A stretch of DNA of 41,660 bases from Dicyema japonicum (Eukaryota; Animalia; Dicyemida), in assembly GCA_011109175.1 (NCBI GenBank), contig RDEW01000034.1:106670-148329 (forward strand), read 5' to 3'. Shown here piece by piece: positions 7,631-29,975 of the stretch; positions within the stretch are counted from its first letter, which is position 1; the number at the start of each line of letters is the position of its first letter. The position numbers and the translations under genes are program-made. The notes under the pieces were generated by a model. That model did no database searches and was not told where the DNA came from. It worked only from the letters and a program-made list of their open reading frames with translations.

Positions 7631-7682
7631 ATTCTTTGGTTCTCCCTCTACGATTAGTTATTCTTTGGTTCTCCCTCTACGA
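7631..7682. repeat. 23-bp direct repeat, two copies
   Basis: ATTCTTTGGTTCTCCCTCTACGA at 7631-7653 and 7660-7682. Confidence 0.9.
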
Positions 7683-8016: not shown

Positions 8017-10287
8017 TTAAAAAAGCTCAGCGTAGTAATAGATCTCTTTCATATCGGATAGTAAACATACAGTTTCAATTTTCATAATAATGTTATGAGA
8101 AACAAACATGTCCATAAATAAGGAATTATGATAGAATAATGTTTGATTGGCACATTCCCACACAGCCCAAAGCCAAATTCGTTCATCTGTGTTGACATTT
8201 AATAAATTTATTGTTGACTCCATTGACCTTAAGGAAATACCTAGGAAATACCTCATATCTAAATCAACAGAAAATATCGTTTCTCTGATATCACAGCCGA
8301 TTAGAAAATTAAGATTTTTTATAAAATGAACAATTTTTTCTAGAATGTGTTCACGTGGATTCAAATCACTAAAATCAGAATTCAAAAAAGTAGGAAAAAT
8401 ATCATTTGGATCACATAATATATGGCAGATACATCTATATAAAAAATAGGTGACATCAGTATAACGGTTTGAGTATTCAATTTCCCTTTTCAATAAACAA
8501 AAATATTACAATATAAGATCTAGTAGACGATGCGTCCTTATTAAATATCTGGTGTTTGAGGATTTAGCCATATTTTCCACAATTTTAAATAAAAGAATTA
8601 ATATATAATTGTCTTCATGGGTAGACACAGAAAATCTGTCGAAAAAATAATAAATATAATAAATTCCACTATAATCAAGAAACAAATTCACATTCTTTTC
8701 ATTTTCGTCTACAAAAATATATTTTAAATACCTAGAAGACACGTCAACAAACTAAAACGGAGTATATTATTTTTGTCATCTTTTTTAAACTGTTCAACGC
8801 ATGACTAAAAATTTATTGTTCTTTGAACTTTGACAAGTCCTTCAGAATAGCCAAGATAGGCAAGAAGATTGATACTCAATTTTTTTACAACACAACGAGG
8901 ATGACGATAAAAATCATTATTCCAGTAATAAAGTTTTATTAACACAATTGAAAGTGCAGGAAGCTAAAAATAAGAATTAACTAACAAAAATAGATATCGC
9001 CCACAATTTAAAATCATCCAAAAACTTACAATAAAAAGATCGCATTAAATTACACATATCTTTATACGTAATAATGTCAAGAAAAGTATCAAAAATAAAG
9101 CTATGGATGAAATCTACTTATACCAAGCATTAGCATATGAAATTGGTTGATTTATGATTATGCTGTTTAGAATTTCCCTGAAATTAAAATATTAAATTAC
9201 AGAATTGAAAAAGCATACAGATATTTACAATCATATAAAAAGCGACGGAGAAGCTAAATTTATATTTTAAAATACTCTCAAAAATGGTTTCAATAATTTA
9301 TTTTCAATTTTAAATTTAAAACTAATAATCGACTCAAAAACACCCGCCAGGAGATCAATGTCATTCAAACGTAGAGCAGATCTGACTATGTTATTTAAAG
9401 TTGATTCCGAATCATTCTATATTCTTTAATATAAATACAGAATCGGTTATATTTTTACTGAAATGTAAAATTTTCCCATCTTGAAATTTTTTAAATCCCA
9501 TTTTTTTAATTTTGCTAAGATTATTAAAATCAATAACTTTGTTAACTTTTTTAGTTTTCTTTTTTTAATAAAACATCCAGATAAATTTACGTAAGTAAGG
9601 TTCTTGGCTTTTTTGAAAAAAGAATAGAAATTACTGTCACATCCATTGCAGCGAAAATAACTTGTATGTATAAAATGTCTAAAATTGAGAGAGAATCTAC
9701 CTCAGAGACTCTGGACTGTTTAGGGTTGAAATAAAATTATCAAAATTGGAAATAAAAACATCGTGAAAATTTATGCGTTCCAGTTTTTCTATTATTTTCA
9801 ATGTACTGTTAATTTTGGTTTTTTTACCGAGTCCAACGAGGGAGAGATACTTTATTTTTCTAAATCCAGTCATAAATAACTGATTTAGCAAATCTGGGTC
9901 ATCGTACTTACAGAGTGTGAATGATTTAACGTTATTCGATAAATACGGTAGTTCAGGATTCTTTTCTGATGAAACAATCCTTCTTATTGTAATATTTGAT
10001 AAATTTGGATAAACTTGAATCATGTTAACAACCTTCTTAATGTCAACATTCTGATTAGTCAACTGAATGCAAAAAATGTCTTTCTGCACTACATCTGAAA
10101 TTTTATTTAAAAATGAATCTTTAAAAAGTAGATCTCTCTTAGAGTGAGGAATCAAATATTTCAATTCGTTAAGAGTTCTTTTGGAAATCATTTTCTTAGA
10201 TTTATCGCTTAATTTTATATATTTTTGTTCTTTAACGTTCGTTCGAATATTATTGATGCATAATGCATATAATGAAGGTGCTTCCAT
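8017..10287 (-). CDS. ZER1: ZER1/ZYG-11 family protein (BC-box, LRR, ARM; CRL2 E3 ligase substrate receptor), 11 exons, about 680 aa
   Basis: Exons (minus): 10287-9701, 9678-9538, 9514-9439, 9416-9276, 9253-9201, 9177-9124, 9100-8986, 8963-8829, 8804-8732, 8708-8510, 8485-8017. They total 2043 nt = 681 codons with no internal stop. N-terminal PSLYALC resembles the ZER1 BC-box, and KNLTYVNLSGC is LRR-like. The C-terminal LRFSLLTCLLDENEKNVNLFLDYSG, ENMAK, DVTYFLYRCICHILCD and SLRSMESTINLL...WLWAVWECAN align by eye with ZER1 ARM repeats (FSWSALWNITDETPDNCEMFLNFNG, GNVAE, EVSYNACGVLSHIMFD, NYRSFEPILRLL...QHWATWALYN). ZER1 versus ZYG11 orthology is not resolved, and the intron 2 boundaries are the least certain. 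Confidence 0.85.
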
Positions 10288-20629: not shown

Positions 20630-21760
20630 CACAGTAAAAATAGGATCATTTGCTACCACAATCCAAGATGAACGTCTTTCGTCAACGGATCTCTCTGTAT
20701 TACTCATCTGACCTGTTAGAAACGTTATTAATCATTTCTGGAGGCATCAAACCTAATCCGGTACCTGCGAAATCTATTTCCATCATTCAACTCAGCATAG
20801 GAAAGATAATCGAGGTCAGAACTTTCTCGAATAAATACGACGTCGACGTGTTCCTCCATGAGACGAAACTGACATACTCTTCCCCAACTCCAACGCTTCC
20901 GGGATACACCGTTATCAGAAAGGCTCGCTAGTTTTGCTGTGGGGGAAGTAGTCATTACCCTCGTCAAAATTGAGATCGGAACACAAAAACGCATTTACAT
21001 TATGTCCTTCATCTCCCATGGAATACATTGGGATCTCAATTCGAACCAAAATTGTAAATATTACAATTTGAACTTTTACATTCCTCTACCAGCTCCTACC
21101 CAAAAAAATTTCCTTCTCCCTTATGTGTTACATCAATAACAACATTTTTGATTTGTGCCGACCTCAACACGAAACACGGACCTAGTACAAAAGCCAGGTC
21201 CTCTCTCATGGATAATTTCATAATCCTTAACGTCTATCGGATGAACACAAGAACACATCATGAAAACAAGACTTCACCTAATTTCACCATTGCTACTCCC
21301 AACATTACTTCTCCTGGAACTGTCTGTGATCTATGACTTAAGGTACCACCATAATCCATCAAACAAATTTGGAGTGACTTCATAAATGGTTGAACTCAAA
21401 TTCAATAGAAGGCTATCAAGTCATTCCGCCGAACTATTTTTGAATTGTGAACTAATCCCTCACAAGAAGCAAGATAGAATGCTGGGAGTAACATTTGACA
21501 TCCTCATGGCCTTCAGCACATATGTGTCAAACGTCATTAGTGTTTCGGCACGAATGCTTAAGTTCATGAAGATGTCTTTAAATTCAAAAAAATCCTCAAA
21601 CTGGTCATTTTCCACGTTGTACACCGAATTCATCGAGAAAACTATAAGTGATAAATGTGCACTTGAAGAACAAAACTTGCTCAATCCAGTATGATAAAAA
21701 CAATCTCCCAAATCACAGGACTACTGATAAGGGCAACTTTATTGAGGTCATTGTGAGTAG
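20630..21760 (+). mobile_element. APE-type LINE remnant with 2A-like motif, copy 2
   Basis: LLIISGGIKPNPVP, HETKLT, LPGYTVIRK, ICADLN, MLGVTFD. Confidence 0.8.
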
Positions 21761-23439
21761 TCGGGAGGCACATTCATCAAAAATGGAAATCCCCAAAAAG
21801 AACGGTGATGTCGGAATCACCTGATAGCCTTTTCCTTTTAATTAGTGTTTACCTGGTGATTTTTGGAGAAAGTATTTTAGATAACCACAAGTTCGGGATT
21901 AGGGAATCCAATGATGAATTCACATCTGATTCGACATTGTGTAAAATATGAAGATGCTTAAAGAGATTTCTGGGTCTCAATACAAGAAAATATTAATTTT
22001 ATAAAAAGTGTAAAAATTGATTTTGATGATCAATTCAGCGTTAGGGAACCACGTGGAGAGGTCTCCAAACTAAAAGGAAACGAAAATTTGATTTTGTTCA
22101 ATAACTTTGGGGACGCGTAATCATGTCTTTTTTTTGGACGAGTAAATGTGGCGGTAATCAAATAGCACTCCTAATGTGTAGTAAATTACAAGTATTATTC
22201 TGCTGATCTTAGATGATCTCCCTATGAGCATTACCACGTCGCTACCAAAACCTACCTAACAAATTAACACAAAAACAGGAATAACGTCAAGTAATCAGGT
22301 GATCCTAATCACCAAAACCAACTGTGACATCCAAGGGTTGTGAGCATTCATTGTCCCTACCAATGAGCGAAAGTGCCAGTTCTCATTCCTGTAGAAGAAT
22401 TTAATTGGAGATGAAAACCTCTTCGCAGGAATTTGTCTTTAAATCTACATAAATTATCATAGAATTATGTTAAATTGATTTTTTTGTCAAGCTCCTAAAA
22501 TTTCATTCGATCATAAGCATATCAAAGTAAATAAGATCATTATCATAATTACAATGCCTCAAAAGACAGTTCGATTTCTAGCAGATTTAGCCGTACCTAA
22601 GAAATTCATGACCCAAATCGCTTTTCACAAAATGTGATCGGATATTTAACTGTCGAAAAAAAGTAACTGATTGAGCTCACTACCTCTCTTAATTCATAGA
22701 GATATTTACTAATATGTTACATAATTAATTAAAGATGATTGATTTCTCTATACATAAATTATCATAGAATTATGTTAAATTGATTTTTTTGTCAAGCTAC
22801 TAAAATTTCATTCGATCATAAGCATATCAAAGTAAATAAGATCATCATCATAATTACAATGCCTCAAGAGACAGTTCGATTTCTAGCAGATTTAGCCGTA
22901 CCTAAGAAATTCATGACCCAAATCGCTTTTCACAAAATGTGATCGGATATTTAACTGTCGAAAAAAAGTAACTGATTGAGCTCACTACCATTCTTAATTC
23001 ATAGAGATATTTACTAATATGTTACATAATTAATTAAAGATGATTGATTTCTTTATTTTTATCAAAATTATAATCATTTTAACATCTACTCATTCGATCT
23101 CTAATTAAAGATCTATTACTTTACTTTTCCTACATTTTCAGGGATAAGTAAAAATTAAACTAATTAAAGCTAATAACTCAGTACAGTCTAATTACAGTAC
23201 AGCCCGACCCCGAAATGGTGCAATAATTCCTAAATTGTGAGGTTTTCACCAAAAAATGATGTCATATTTTGGTTGAACTGGAGACGTGGTTTTTAAAATT
23301 GTATCTTTAAAACACGTTTCAAATAATCTGTTCACATTGGTCTTATTAAGCCTAATAAAATGTGGAAAAAGTACTTTTATAATTAAAATTACTATAACAC
23401 ATTAAAAACAAGAAAAATTATTAGATTTTTATTTTGATA

Positions 23440-24330
23440 GAGTAAACGGTTATATAGCGGCTGCTCTGACTGCGTGGCTATTCCTTCTCATTATACGAGC
23501 GAGATTCGCTCAAATAACCAGCAACGCTCACGAGGGGTTCTTATTCGTGTAGCGATCCGATTCCCGAGACGACTAAAGAATTCATTATTTAAGAAGGTAC
23601 CCAGAACTCCATTGGGAATGACCTTGAGCCAGGCACAGCTCTCGGAAGACGCCCCCTGAATACAAACAGGCACGGCGATGTTGGCTAGATGAGACTAGCA
23701 AATTTTTGAAAGAATTCCAGCATATAGCATCGTCCAAGCTTCGCTGAGAGAACGAAAAAAACAGGGAAAGTTGATAAGTGCGTCTCCAGACTTCACGAGC
23801 ATGGCCTGCGTCCTTGTCAATAGAGAATTCAGGTAGAGAGTGTAGAATCTTCTCGACATGTGAGTCACAGTTAACTAGTGATGATAGGTATGAAAGGAGA
23901 GAATGGTCTACAGGGTTCCGAATTCCAAATCCTCCGAGTCTCACTGGCTGCGTGGCTTGCTTCCATGAGTAATTGTCGAACCGGACTTTGCAGTTACGTT
24001 CCGCTGTCATACGGAATATCTTGTTAATCTGTACGAGTTGGTCACATTTAGTGTAATAGGGAGCAATCTCAGGACATATGCAAGCCTCTGTATGTTGAGA
24101 CTGTTTTTCAGGAGAAGTAATGCTGTATGTATGTCAAGTAGACAGAAGCGGTTCAGAGTGTCTCCGAGTAACAGTAGTTTTTCACGCATAGCACATCCTA
24201 TTGCTTTTATGGTATTGGGGATCGCCGCTATATTACCGTTTACTCTTTTTTCTTTTTCTTTGATGAAAAAATCTGTCATTTTCATGATGTTAATTAACAC
24301 TGACGGCTTGAATGGAGTATTATATTTATC
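23440..24330 (-). mobile_element. CRE-clade retrotransposon remnant with internal deletion and intact 3' end
   Basis: WKQATQPVRLGGFGIRNP, ESCAWLKVIPNG.LGTFL, PRERCWLFERISL. Confidence 0.85.
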
Positions 24331-24949
24331 AAATTGAATAATTTTTCGTTTTTAAGAATTTTGAATTTTATATCAATCTTAAATCTTTGTAACAACCCAT
24401 TTGATGCACAGAGTATTTATTTAAAATTGTATAAGCCCATTCTCGAAGAAATAGTTATTGAAACTTTTTTTGGAGTTCCAGAAACTGGAAAAACGCATTA
24501 AAATTTACAAAAAATTGAAATTAAACGTTACTTTTAAAATATTTATTTTATAAAATCGGCTAGTAAAATTATATAATTAATTTTTTTTTCATAATAAAAA
24601 ATTATTGCCCAAATAGAGGTGCTAAATTTTATAGATTTGAATACTTTTGGTAGAAAATTTAGATAACCCCCAAGAGTTTTTACAATAACCTAGAAATTAA
24701 AGTATTTATATCTCCTTAATCACGATTTTAATAAAATTATGAAAATTTTATCTTATAATTTGTATGTTAAGCTGAATAATGTCAAATTATTCCATTTACC
24801 TCCGGAAGATTGACTGTTTTACCAAATTATTTCATTACCACATTCTAAATATACGACGAGGTAGTTTTATTATAGAATTTGTAAAAATCGACATTCGTGT
24901 AAATTTCTGATTTGAATGTGGCGATACTTAACGAAGTTTATCTTAATTT

Positions 24950-25560: not shown

Positions 25561-25634
25561 GCACATATCTTTTTTAGTGAAAGACGAATGAATATAATGT
25601 TTTATTAATTTTTATGATAATAAGTTGTAAGATT

Positions 25635-25716
25635 GCGAACATGGTCGAGCGGTCTAAGACGGCAGCTTTAGGTGCTGTTATCTTCGGATGCGTGGGTTCC
25701 AATCCCACTGTTGGTA
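25635..25716 (+). tRNA. tRNA-Leu (TAG) variant copy, possibly a pseudogene
   Basis: Differs from 28911-28992 at 4 positions: an acceptor-stem mismatch (C3>G), T-loop TTCCAAT instead of TTCGAAT, and a compensatory D-stem pair (GTC/GAC). Confidence 0.75.
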
Positions 25717-25899
25717 TTTTTCTAATTCTTATTATATATTTTTTTAAAATTGTAATTTTATAGTAGATTTTTTTATACAGTTATTTTTTAAAACACCCTC
25801 AGTTTTTGGGTGTTATGATAAGAATAATGTAGCAAACTCAAAAGAAAATTTTATGACATAAAATAAGCGCAGTTTCTTCTTTGATACAAGCAATTCACT

Positions 25900-26520
25900 C
25901 TTCCAGTGTATTTTGAACTCATTACCAACGTTAAAATTGCCATTAACCAATGCGACCAAACATCATTACTTGTCGCTTTAGTGTTTCGAAATACATTTCC
26001 CAGAAATGAGAATTTTCTGTATATCTATTCTCGTGAGATTGAATCAGTTGCTGATTTAAAAAGTTTCTTCGACTCCTACAGAATCTGCAGAAATCAGAAA
26101 TATAAATCATTTGATAGTCAGACCGACAGATAGACCTTTACTAGTTCTTTAGCTAAATTAATAAGAGAGGCTTCTAATTCAAACCAACACCGACGTGCCT
26201 GTATGAACACTGAAAGATCTTCGTAATCAGTGTTTGTATTAATGACCTCGCTATTGTTGGCACACATTTTGACGATACTCTCTGCATCAGACAAAGACTT
26301 TAGCCTGATATGACATGTGACGTCGATTGATATGGATATATCTAAGAACCTCAGAAAGATTCCCATGACAAAGCAATAAACGGAACCTAGAAACGTGCTC
26401 TGTAGTCTGCTAGATTCCCCTCTAAACTGAACCGCTCGGCCTAGACAGATAAGGAGAAGCCATTGGTTAGTTTTGTTCTTCCACATCGTCCCAGTAGTCA
26501 CGTTGTATGCCACCGCTAAA
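25900..26520 (-). mobile_element. Possible hAT (Tip100/ZMYM1-like) remnant inside the duplicated unit (also ~29180-29800)
   Basis: CLGRAVQFRGE resembles LA.QGL.FRG, and ISISIDVTCHI resembles FSI.ADETTDI. Confidence 0.35.
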
Positions 26521-26929: not shown

Positions 26930-28852
26930 GTTGAGACGTTCCGTGGATCGCACCTTTTTGAGGCGAGTTTGCTTCCAATGCTGTGGATAAAAGCTACCGT
27001 CTTCGCGCCTACAGCTCCAGTTGTTTCCATAGAAATGAGAGCGAAATGGTAATGGTCTTACTTATGGATCTTCTTAACTTCCGCCTAGTCGGCTGCGTCT
27101 CCAGGAGAATGCGTCGCTGTCAGCAATCTGGCTCCTGAGAAGTGTCCACACACGTTGCGTCCCAGACGAGTGATTTCCGTGGGAGAATGGGAATAACGTC
27201 ATTCCATCCGGCCTCTTTTCGTCGCCTCTGTCTAAGCCCAATGATTCCAATTGGGCAGGAAATTCCGCAGCCTTGAAGGCTCGAAAAATGATGTCATTGA
27301 GGGCTGTATGGCGTGGGGCTCGACCAGCACTCCCTCGGCAAGAAAGTAAAAGTAATCTTTCGTATCAACATCTCCGCCTCAATGGCATTTGTGTCTCTGG
27401 CATATGTCCAGTCCTAGGCGCAGTGCCACCCCGATCCTCAAGCTGTTTTCGTCAAAGAGGGTCCCCATATGTGGACAAAGTTGGGCCTCGAGCCAGACAC
27501 CATTTCCTCGATGTGCGGCCGACTTAATGCTTTTTAGTCGGTGTTGTTGGCGCTTTTCTTCGCGGCCTCCAGAGTGCTCATACATGTGATCGAGTCCTAA
27601 TTCTTCTGGCAAGCGAAGTTCGACGGGAATTCCAAGTCCAACTAACCACACAACTTGCAAACTCTGTCAAGCTCTGAGTCCAAGGTATGTCCGGTTGCGT
27701 TACGTAGGACTGCTTGGGCCAAGCGACTGCAGCTCGCAAGGGATGAAAAGTAGGCAGGCAGGGCGGCTTCAAGAAGGGATCTCAACCCAATGCCCCCATT
27801 TCTCGCAGGTTGTTTGCACATAGTCCATCCCAGATCATCGAATTTGACATTCAGTATTGACTCCGCCGATCGTCTCAGAGTTCCATCAGCAGACAATAGT
27901 GCATTCCTGTCGTTGTTTCCGAAAGGGCAGCCAAGGAAGTGTACCTTGTCCAAGGAGGATATGCTGAAACCTGGAAGTAGGAATCTGAATTCTTGGCAGG
28001 CATTAGAAAAGTTTGGAGATGAGCAGGAAATATTGATCAGTTCCGATTTTATAACGTTGACACTTAAACCCAATTAGTTTAGAGCTGGAATGGTTGTAGA
28101 AATATCCTGTTGTACGTTCTCCCATGGGCCAGCTATTGTGGCGTCGTCCAAGTCCCACAGGTTGAGTTCACATTTTATGCTTCGTGCCACTGTGTCAATT
28201 GTCATTGCAAAAAGCAAAGGCCCTAGATAGTCTTCCTGCTGAACGCCTGTGCGTGAATAAACGATATCGTTTCCGTAAACAAAGGCTGAGTCCGTCCCAT
28301 ACGATAAGTGTACAAGTCGCCCAATCTCTGGAGCTCTTTTCCAACAGGTTTCCAAAATACAGTCTCTCCTCAGCGTGTTGAAGGCATTTGATATATCAAG
28401 CTTCAGGCCTAGCCTTTGGGTCTGGGAATTATCGTTGTTGAAGTAACTCCTCGCGGCTTGGACTGCTGCCTCGCAACCGCCGCTCACTCCCACCCCAAGT
28501 TGAGTCGGAAACAGCTCTTCAGCAACATTGTGGGAGACTCTCCGGGCAGCGATTTTACCAGCAAACCTTCGAAAGTATGTACCGATTGCAATTGAGCGAA
28601 CACCATCTCCTTTTTGGAATGCCAATAGATGTCGACAAAAAAGATCTCTAGCAAATTTTGGAATATCACCATTAACTATTCGAGTGAGCAGCAAAATGAT
28701 AGACGTTAACAAGGCACGGCCGGCTTAAGCAGTAGCTTCAGAGGTTAAGTCCTTTATATGTCTTGGGCGCAGTCCGTTTAGGCCTCCGCAGCTACTGGGT
28801 GCAAAAGACTACTTCAAATTCCGTGGCAGTAAATGCCGGGAGGTCTTCTGGC
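26930..28852 (-). mobile_element. CRE-clade retrotransposon, largest and least decayed copy (RT plus RLE; frameshifted)
   Basis: GLNGLRPRHIKDL, LLAFQKGDGVRSIAIG, QLGVGVSGGCEAAV, LKLDISNAFNTL, GVQQEDYLGPLLF, WDLDDATI, GGIGLRS, LRIGVALRLGL.ICQRHKC, RHTALNDII, GDEKRPDGMTLFP, WDATCVDT. The 5' end runs into the N gap and the extreme 3' end is missing. Confidence 0.93.
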
Positions 28853-28908: not shown

Positions 28909-29975
28909 TTGCCAACATGGCCGAGCGGTCTAAGGCGGCAGCTTTAGGTGCTGTTATCTTCGGATGCGTGGGTTCGAATCCCACTGTTGGTATTTTTCTA
29001 ATTTTAATTAGATATATTTTTAAAAATGTAATTTTATAGTAGATTTTTTATACAGTTATTTTTTTAAAACCACCTCAGTTTTTGGGTGTTATGATAAGAT
29101 AATGTAGCAAACTCAAAATAAATTTTTTTTGAAATAAAATAAGCGCAGTTTTTTCTTTTTATACAAACAATTCACTCTTCCAGTGTATTTTGAACTCCTT
29201 ACCAACGTTAAAATTGCCGATTAAACAATGCGACCAAACAGCATTACTTGTCGCTTTAGTGTTTCGAAATCCATTTCCCAGCAATGGGTATTTTCTTTAT
29301 ATCTATTCTCGTAAGATTAAATCACTTGCTGATTTAAAAAGATTTTTCAGAATCTGCAGAAATCAGAAATATAAATCATTTGATAGTCAGACAGATAGAC
29401 CTTTACTAGTTCCTCAGCTAAATCAATAGGAGAGGCTTCTAATTCAAACCAACACCGACGTGCCTGTATGGTCACTGAAAGATCTTTTGATCAGTGGTTG
29501 TATTAATGACCTCGCTATTGTTGGTACCCATCTTGACGATACTCTCTGCATCAGACGAAGACTTTAGCTTGATATGACATGTGACGTCGATTGATATGGA
29601 TATCATGGCCTTATGTCTAAGAACCTCAGAAAGATTCCCACGACAAGGCAATAAACGGAACCTAGAAACGTGCTCTGTAGTCTGCTAGATTCCCCTCTAA
29701 ACTGAACCGCTCGGCCTAGACAGATAAGGAGAAGCCATTGGTTAGTTTTGTTCTTTCCAAGTCGTCCCAGTAGTCACGTTGTATGCCACCGCTAAAGCCG
29801 AGAAGGCTTAGGGGAGAAATACGATGGACATCTTGACCTGACTGGTACATGTTCTGTGATCCACTTTACCTAGGTGACGACAATGTCTTGATGGTATTCA
29901 TAAGAATCCATAGAATCCAGTACGAGGGAGGAGCACCGGGAAAGAATGAGGATTTTTGGCGGAGCGCATCGAGAT
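28909..29975. repeat. ~1.06-kb duplicated unit, copy 2
   Basis: Collinear with 25631-26695; its left boundary is hidden by the N gap. Confidence 0.92.
28911..28992 (+). tRNA. tRNA-Leu (anticodon TAG), apparently intact
   Basis: Full cloverleaf: acceptor GCCAACA/TGTTGGT, D-stem GCC/GGC, anticodon stem GCAGC/GCTGT with loop TT-TAG-GT, variable arm ATC-TTCG-GAT, T-arm GTGGG-TTCGAAT-CCCAC. A T5 Pol III terminator follows immediately. Confidence 0.93.

Follow-up and report, generated by a model that had tools for sequence, protein, structure and literature searches.

Gene structure at the locus

A ZYG11/ZER1-like coding region occupies positions 8017-10287 on the minus strand of the window, by which we mean the whole 41.6-kb stretch of DNA that was analysed. 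In the ten-intron model, it runs from a start ATG at 10287 to a stop TAA at 8019-8017. Excision of ten GT..AG segments leaves 11 exons of 53-587 nt, which are joined in a single frame of 680 codons encoding 680 aa. Without splicing, the region consists of many short frames, and ORFs longer than 120 aa are obtained only from the first and last exons. Exon 1 (9703-10287, minus strand; 195 aa) has a VHL-box-like start followed by an LRR-like region, as suggested by ESM-atlas look-alikes and a low-confidence model. Neither TAA nor TAG occurs in frame within the exons, and TAA terminates the gene, indicating that the gene is read by the standard genetic code. The locus is very likely an ordinary protein-coding gene in the nuclear genome of a dicyemid mesozoan (almost certainly Dicyema japonicum), with ten, probably eleven, miniaturised U2-type GT-AG introns and ZYG11/ZER1 CRL2 architecture. 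No second copy of the gene was found in the window by tblastn with the spliced protein as a query. A Pfam scan of 20 other ORFs of the window gave a reverse-transcriptase fragment as the sole match.

The frame was compared with what chance would produce by a dynamic-programming search in which any GT..AG segment of 22-24 nt could be skipped in any codon phase. The longest stop-free path on the minus strand is 2069 nt and passes through exactly the ten segments that had been proposed as introns, and the plus strand gives 182 nt. In 200 dinucleotide-style shuffles, the same search reached 225 nt on average and 398 nt at most; with skips of 22-24 nt, the real path is five times as long as the best of 200 shuffles. 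When the whole window was searched with skips of 21-26 nt and a penalty for each skip, this gene was the top-scoring model, with a score of 1769, and the best paths of five shuffled windows reached 419-530. When the skip range was widened to 19-39 nt, many spurious "genes" of 160-700 aa appeared elsewhere in the window. This suggests that the narrow length distribution of the real introns is part of the signal. The spurious models could also be taken to mean that the 680-aa frame itself is a chance product of picking GT..AG segments in AT-rich DNA. However, this reading has practically no chance of being right, since the margin over the shuffles was obtained with skips restricted to 22-24 nt, two exons of 587 and 469 nt are each open unaided in DNA of 27% G+C, and hints of one protein family are found at both ends of the protein. 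The shuffle test and the window score refute it.

Introns and their signals

The original prediction placed ten introns in this gene. All ten are present on the minus strand, start with GT and end with AG (10/10), and have exactly the claimed lengths of 22, 23, 22, 22, 23, 23, 22, 24, 23 and 24 nt. As for the count, all ten were found, but the number is probably eleven, because the sequence supported by reads also requires excision of 8228-8251, which is discussed below. Intron 1 (9679-9700, 22 nt, GTA..TAG) is spanned unspliced by a genomic contig. Intron 2 (9515-9537, 23 nt, GTT..TAG), intron 3 (9417-9438, 22 nt, GTA..TAG), intron 4 (9254-9275, 22 nt, GTA..TAG), intron 5 (9178-9200, 23 nt, GTA..CAG), intron 6 (9101-9123, 23 nt, GTA..TAG) and intron 7 (8964-8985, 22 nt, GTT..TAG) were identified in the sequence and in genomic contigs, and intron 9 (8709-8731, 23 nt, GTA..TAG) in the sequence. 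The other two introns have a length that is a multiple of three (3n). Intron 8 (8805-8828, 24 nt), likewise identified in the sequence, lies in phase 0 and its own terminal TAG is an in-frame stop. Intron 10 (8486-8509, 24 nt), identified in the sequence and in a genomic contig, lies in phase 2 and has an in-frame TAA 4 nt past the 5' splice site.

The introns are AT-rich, as had been claimed, with 18% G+C compared with 28% in the exons. Their 5' ends are GTA in seven introns and GTT in three, and their 3' ends are TAG in eight, CAG in one and AAG in one. In signal statistics that are weak because they come from ten introns (n=10) on an AT-rich background, an A is located 6-8 nt upstream of the terminal G in nine of the ten introns, and T is found at positions -3 to -6 in 6-8 of the ten. 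Introns of D. japonicum and of myxobolids have been described as having reduced signals, with a 5' GTa, a 3' AG and weak A residues ahead of the latter (PMC13644364). Since nine of the ten introns here show the same ending, an A followed by a short T run, the statement that there is no obvious branch-point consensus was slightly too strong. The A upstream of the terminal G is probably the branch point. Besides this A and the short T run that follows it, the reduced signals of these introns comprise GTA or GTT at the start and, in most cases, TAG at the end.

Retention of any single intron of the ten brings in a stop within 4-91 nt. In-frame stops are found in both 24-nt introns (2/2), as predicted, and this had been interpreted as the pattern of Paramecium, in which NMD removes unspliced transcripts. 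However, a random 24-nt intron of the same composition has an in-frame stop with a probability of 0.56-0.72, depending on the phase, and the chance that both 3n introns have one is 0.72 x 0.60 = ~0.43. Because stops in two of two introns are expected about 43% of the time, an NMD pattern is not supported by this gene. Furthermore, the candidate eleventh intron is also 3n in the window allele and is stop-free there. It was also proposed that introns this short imply a reduced spliceosome. This does not follow, because myxobolids, whose introns are equally short, keep canonical U2 snRNA and U2AF (PMC13644364).

Genomic reads across the gene

The stretch was found in four sequencing runs from a single sample of 2019, in a 2017 run from the same organism and in a 2015 run from a different one. 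Three genomic libraries show even depth across the gene and the flanking intergenic DNA. Genomic contigs run ungapped through the introns (e.g., 9435-9726, 9087-9307 and 8463-8618), and a Nextera junction adaptor was found at the ends of several contigs. The intron segments recur in independent Illumina contigs of genomic DNA, which shows that the assembly did not create them. In a further run, coverage is limited to exon 1 and 39 nt of the last exon, at a depth of 3-4, and no junction is seen. The D. japonicum genome project used four Nextera mate-pair genomic libraries and described a LINE-rich genome with 1.24% heterozygosity and 36.7% G+C (Lu et al. 2019, PMC6736024). The four Nextera mate-pair DNA libraries of 2019 fit the earlier guess, which had been made from the letters alone, that the DNA comes from a dicyemid-like parasite. 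Haplotype differences in this gene are ~1%, compared with the 1.24% heterozygosity of D. japonicum (PMC6736024). Since the four runs of the 2019 sample, the adaptors, these differences and the base composition of the window all agree with that project, we take the four runs to be its DNA libraries and the genome to be that of D. japonicum.

These reads also bear on the idea that the 22-24-nt segments are not removed as RNA, either because they are eliminated at the DNA level or because the DNA comes from a ciliate-like genome with Paramecium-type introns and a variant code. The segments do resemble the micro-introns of Paramecium and other ciliates: their sizes overlap, retention of any of the ten gives a premature stop, and both 3n introns contain stops. 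In Paramecium, retention of micro-introns is reportedly policed by translation and NMD. On the other hand, the 3n stop pattern is not significant, as its chance level shows, and two or three cases here are too few to show a deficit of stop-free 3n introns of the Paramecium type. DNA-level elimination is opposed by the boundaries of the segments, which are GT..AG and not TA..TA, and by their full depth in the genomic libraries. Unlike in ciliates, the gene uses the standard genetic code, with no in-frame TAA or TAG in the exons and TAA as its terminator, and it belongs to an animal gene family; ZYG11 homologues are restricted to metazoans (PMC4878042). In addition, the sequencing libraries fit D. 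japonicum. Taken together, both versions of this idea are highly improbable. The segments behave in silico as ultra-short GT-AG introns, and we infer that they are removed at the RNA level.

Identity of the predicted protein

ZYG11B, ZER1 (ZYG11BL) and C. elegans ZYG-11 are CRL2 substrate receptors for Gly/N-degrons (PMC13201589, PMC4878042). The BC-box consensus is (S,T,P)Lxxx(C,S,A)xxx-hydrophobic (PMC4878042), and residues 5-14 of the predicted protein (10246-10275, minus strand) match it as S-L-x3-C-x3-I. This motif occurs once in the protein, and it lies so near the start in 1.7% of shuffles. Residues 46-54 were compared with the Cul2 box (hydrophobic-P-x-x-hydrophobic-x-x-x-hydrophobic): the I-P and the final L fit, and a K occupies the middle hydrophobic position. 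The spacing between the BC box and the I-P motif is long and similar to that in ZYG11B.

At the other end of the protein, the last exon alone matches the Pfam family PF22964 (ZER1-like_2nd), the C-terminal ARM domain of the family, with 19.7 bits (E-value of 3.5e-4), short of the gathering score of 27. This match corresponds to 8065-8238 on the minus strand and to profile positions 278-334 of 356, and the portion past 8227 alone gives an E-value of 0.0074 and 15.4 bits. In the ESM atlas, exon 1 has LRR families as its look-alikes, among them an LRR_Zer-1 cluster in second place (score 0.94, 176 shared features); for exons 10 and 11, the atlas gives ARM families, some of them ZER1-like_2nd clusters. 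Exons 1, 10 and 11, which lie in different genomic frames, independently resemble the Zer-1 LRR and ARM parts in the expected N-to-C order. In line with the claim of LRR and ARM motifs, the joined product looks like an LRR and ARM protein, judged from the look-alike clusters and the sub-threshold PF22964 match. A Pfam match to PF25013 (LRR_Zer-1), the central LRR domain, was absent at E-values up to 10.

Searches for related sequences gave little. A word-indexed search with single exons found no protein homologues of exon 1 or the last exon even at an E-value of 10, an exhaustive HMMER search with the last exon returned only two chance matches, to low-complexity or LRR sequence, and PDB sequence searches with three exons returned nothing meaningful. 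Single-sequence AlphaFold2 predictions made without an alignment were unusable (pLDDT of 41.5 for exon 1 and 37.8 for the last exon). An alternating strand/helix pattern is seen in the exon 1 model, at low confidence.

The order of the BC box, the LRR part and the ARM part is the architecture of ZYG11/ZER1, and for this reason it is likely that the product is a member of the ZYG11/ZER1-type Cullin-2 substrate receptor family. Like ZYG11B and ZER1, it starts with a BC box, has a proline-containing motif ~40 residues further on, and continues through an LRR-like middle to an ARM-like C-terminal half. The human ZYG11B and ZER1 proteins are about 750 aa, and the length of 672-680 aa here is of the same order. 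It differs from them in being extremely diverged, with no pairwise matches, a Pfam match that stays below threshold and an imperfect Cul2 box. The first half of the 672-680-aa protein encoded by the spliced mRNA would be LRR-like and the second half ARM-like, with a BC box at the N-terminus. Judged from these motifs, the protein, a probable ubiquitin-ligase adaptor, may act as a CRL2 receptor.

Variation between haplotypes

Contigs and window differ by single bases at 23 sites in the coding sequence and at 2 sites in the introns. Twenty of the coding differences are nonsynonymous and three are synonymous, where 20% of random changes are expected to be synonymous, and none of the 23 creates a stop. 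A synonymous excess, which would have served as a check of each exon's frame, is absent among these 23 differences. The ratio of 20:3 therefore gives no sign of purifying selection on the amino-acid sequence between the haplotypes. The reading frame is kept open, yet there is no detectable amino-acid constraint between haplotypes. This lack of constraint fits the extreme divergence of the protein and is also compatible with a fast-evolving gene family.

Base 8231 and a candidate eleventh intron

The predicted 680-aa frame is found in the window sequence, but it needs base 8231, and this base is missing from every spanning Illumina contig in three libraries (236.5/236.5, 175.8/175.8 and 154/154). 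Reads and window differ by one base at three other places (7947, 10345 and 10384), all of them outside the coding region. Base 8231 lies in a GT..AG segment of the last exon (8228-8251, minus strand), which read contigs and the path search indicate as a candidate eleventh intron; its length is 24 nt in the window and 23 nt in every Illumina contig. In its window form, the segment is stop-free and is translated as eight residues of the last exon. A perfect 11-nt tandem duplication (8232-8253) is located inside the candidate intron.

In the read-supported sequence, translation through the unspliced last exon would end after about residue 609. The path search on this sequence picks 8228-8251, here 23 nt, and arrives at the same C-terminus in a protein of 672 aa; no other GT..AG candidate in the last exon restores the frame. 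The Pfam-matching part lies downstream, so that the read allele can keep it in frame only by removal of 8228-8251. On balance, we favour the interpretation that 8228-8251 is an eleventh intron. Its G+C content of 33% is higher than that of the other introns, and it does not have the A-Tn-AG ending.

These last two features are also what would be seen if 8228-8251 were not an intron and the gene were a decaying or fast-drifting copy on its way to becoming a pseudogene, in which base 8231 is a compensating insertion or an assembly error. This is a serious possibility, which we rate somewhat below even. It agrees with the loss of base 8231 from all spanning contigs of the three libraries, and with the perfect duplication, which would shift the frame and end the protein near residue 609; judged from the sequence, the read allele would be in frame if the duplication were taken away. 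The Pfam match also scores higher (19.7 compared with 15.4 bits) if it takes in the four final read-through residues and the portion of the exon upstream of them, and the 20:3 ratio of nonsynonymous to synonymous differences points in the same direction. However, both haplotypes keep the ten other introns and 2 kb of frame intact, and the exons have neither a stop nor another indel. Moreover, the sole GT..AG segment that restores the frame in the read allele is 23 nt long and brackets the lesion exactly, and an assembly error that restored the frame by accident would have to fall within ~10 nt.

If 8228-8251 is indeed an intron, it might be a very young one that arose from the 11-nt duplication by intronization, in a gene that is a member of a fast-evolving, so far unreported dicyemid expansion of ZYG11/ZER1-like genes. 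This combination is speculative and rather unlikely. By this route, the tandem duplication would have broken the frame of the last exon, and a spliceosome that accepts a 23-nt GT..AG segment would rescue the gene by excising the duplication together with 12 nt of former coding sequence. The difference between 23 and 24 nt would be tolerated because the segment is non-coding, and a fast-evolving expansion of receptors would fit the nonsynonymous excess.

Relation to known short introns and meaning of the gene

Short introns are a known character of dicyemids. Intron shortening in 40 genes of D. japonicum was reported by Ogino et al. (2010, Gene 449:70), as cited in PMC6543705. In the genome of Dicyema sp., the median intron is 27 nt and two thirds of introns are shorter than 30 nt (Zverkov et al. 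2019, PMC6543705), and intron miniaturisation is also described in the D. japonicum genome paper (Lu et al. 2019, PMC6736024). In a comparison of 2026, introns of this kind were attributed among animals to D. japonicum and myxobolids only (Hadjez et al., PMC13644364). The gene described here has GT/AG ends in 10/10 introns, lengths below 30 nt, reduced signals and one long frame after intron removal. It is like the published cases in that GT-AG introns shorter than 30 nt, with 5' GTa and a weak A before the 3' AG, interrupt an animal gene several times in an AT-rich genome full of LINEs. It does not differ from them in any essential respect. The ten introns of 22-24 nt are at the short end compared with the median of 27 nt in Dicyema sp. 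and the mean of 38 nt in D. japonicum, and the density of 10-11 introns per gene is about twice the published dicyemid mean of 5-6. Myxobolid myxozoans are also parasitic animals, with median introns of 22-27 nt and the same reduced splice signals (PMC13644364), but they belong to an independent lineage (Cnidaria). The years and library types of the sequencing runs point to the Dicyema project and not to one on a myxozoan.

Because the miniaturisation of dicyemid introns has been published (2010, 2019 and 2026), the general claim of ultra-short introns adds nothing new, and the gene is a correct but ordinary case of it. What is new is the absence of base 8231 with the possible eleventh intron, and the variation rich in nonsynonymous differences. 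The former is of interest because the site of the possible intron is also that of an 11-nt tandem duplication and of a 1-nt difference in length, and the latter because an open reading frame is found with no constraint at the amino-acid level. The gene is also a clean example of how introns of 22-24 nt hide animal genes from ORF-based and default eukaryotic gene finders. The published annotation of D. japonicum contains only 5,012 genes, and the first and last exons of this gene match no searched public protein. This suggests that similar genes may still be missing from the annotation.

Repeats and other sequences around the gene

The greater part of the window (1-41660) appears to be repeats or unrecognisable sequence. 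A unit headed by a tRNA-Leu(TAG) gene occurs twice, at 25633-26336 and 28909-29600; both copies lie on the same strand, are 85-96% identical and are separated by about 3.27 kb. Between them, on the minus strand, lies an ORF fragment of a reverse transcriptase (RVT_1; 28077-28712), and RVT_1 was the sole Pfam match among 20 ORFs of at least 90 aa in the window, the ZYG11/ZER1-like gene aside. Narrow-range micro-intron gene models, which skip only short GT..AG segments, were obtained at 21386-22205 (plus strand), 23492-24416 (minus strand) and 27174-28076 (plus strand), and their scores were near the shuffled background. About 340 nt 3' of the stop codon of the ZYG11/ZER1-like gene, a 23-nt sequence occurs twice as a perfect direct repeat (7631-7682; spacing 29 nt).

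Haplotype differences and the last exon

Comparison of genomic contigs with the window revealed 20 nonsynonymous versus 3 synonymous differences in the coding sequence of this gene (8017-10287), and none of the differences there was a stop. The reading frame is preserved between haplotypes, and no amino-acid-level constraint is detectable between them. The last exon carries a perfect 11-nt tandem duplication (8232-8242 and 8243-8253); the adjoining base, 8231, is present in none of the Illumina contigs. The stretch 8228-8253 holds either an intron of recent origin, 23 nt long, or a frameshift together with an insertion that compensates for it. In the same exon, 8156-8194 codes for the Trp-rich core of the sub-threshold ZER1-like match. 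One contig of X5, a run from 2017, is 571 nt long and overlaps the window in this 39-nt stretch alone, with 1 mismatch. The flanks of the shared stretch in that contig are unrelated to the window on either side; the contig may be a transcript or locus of a paralogue.
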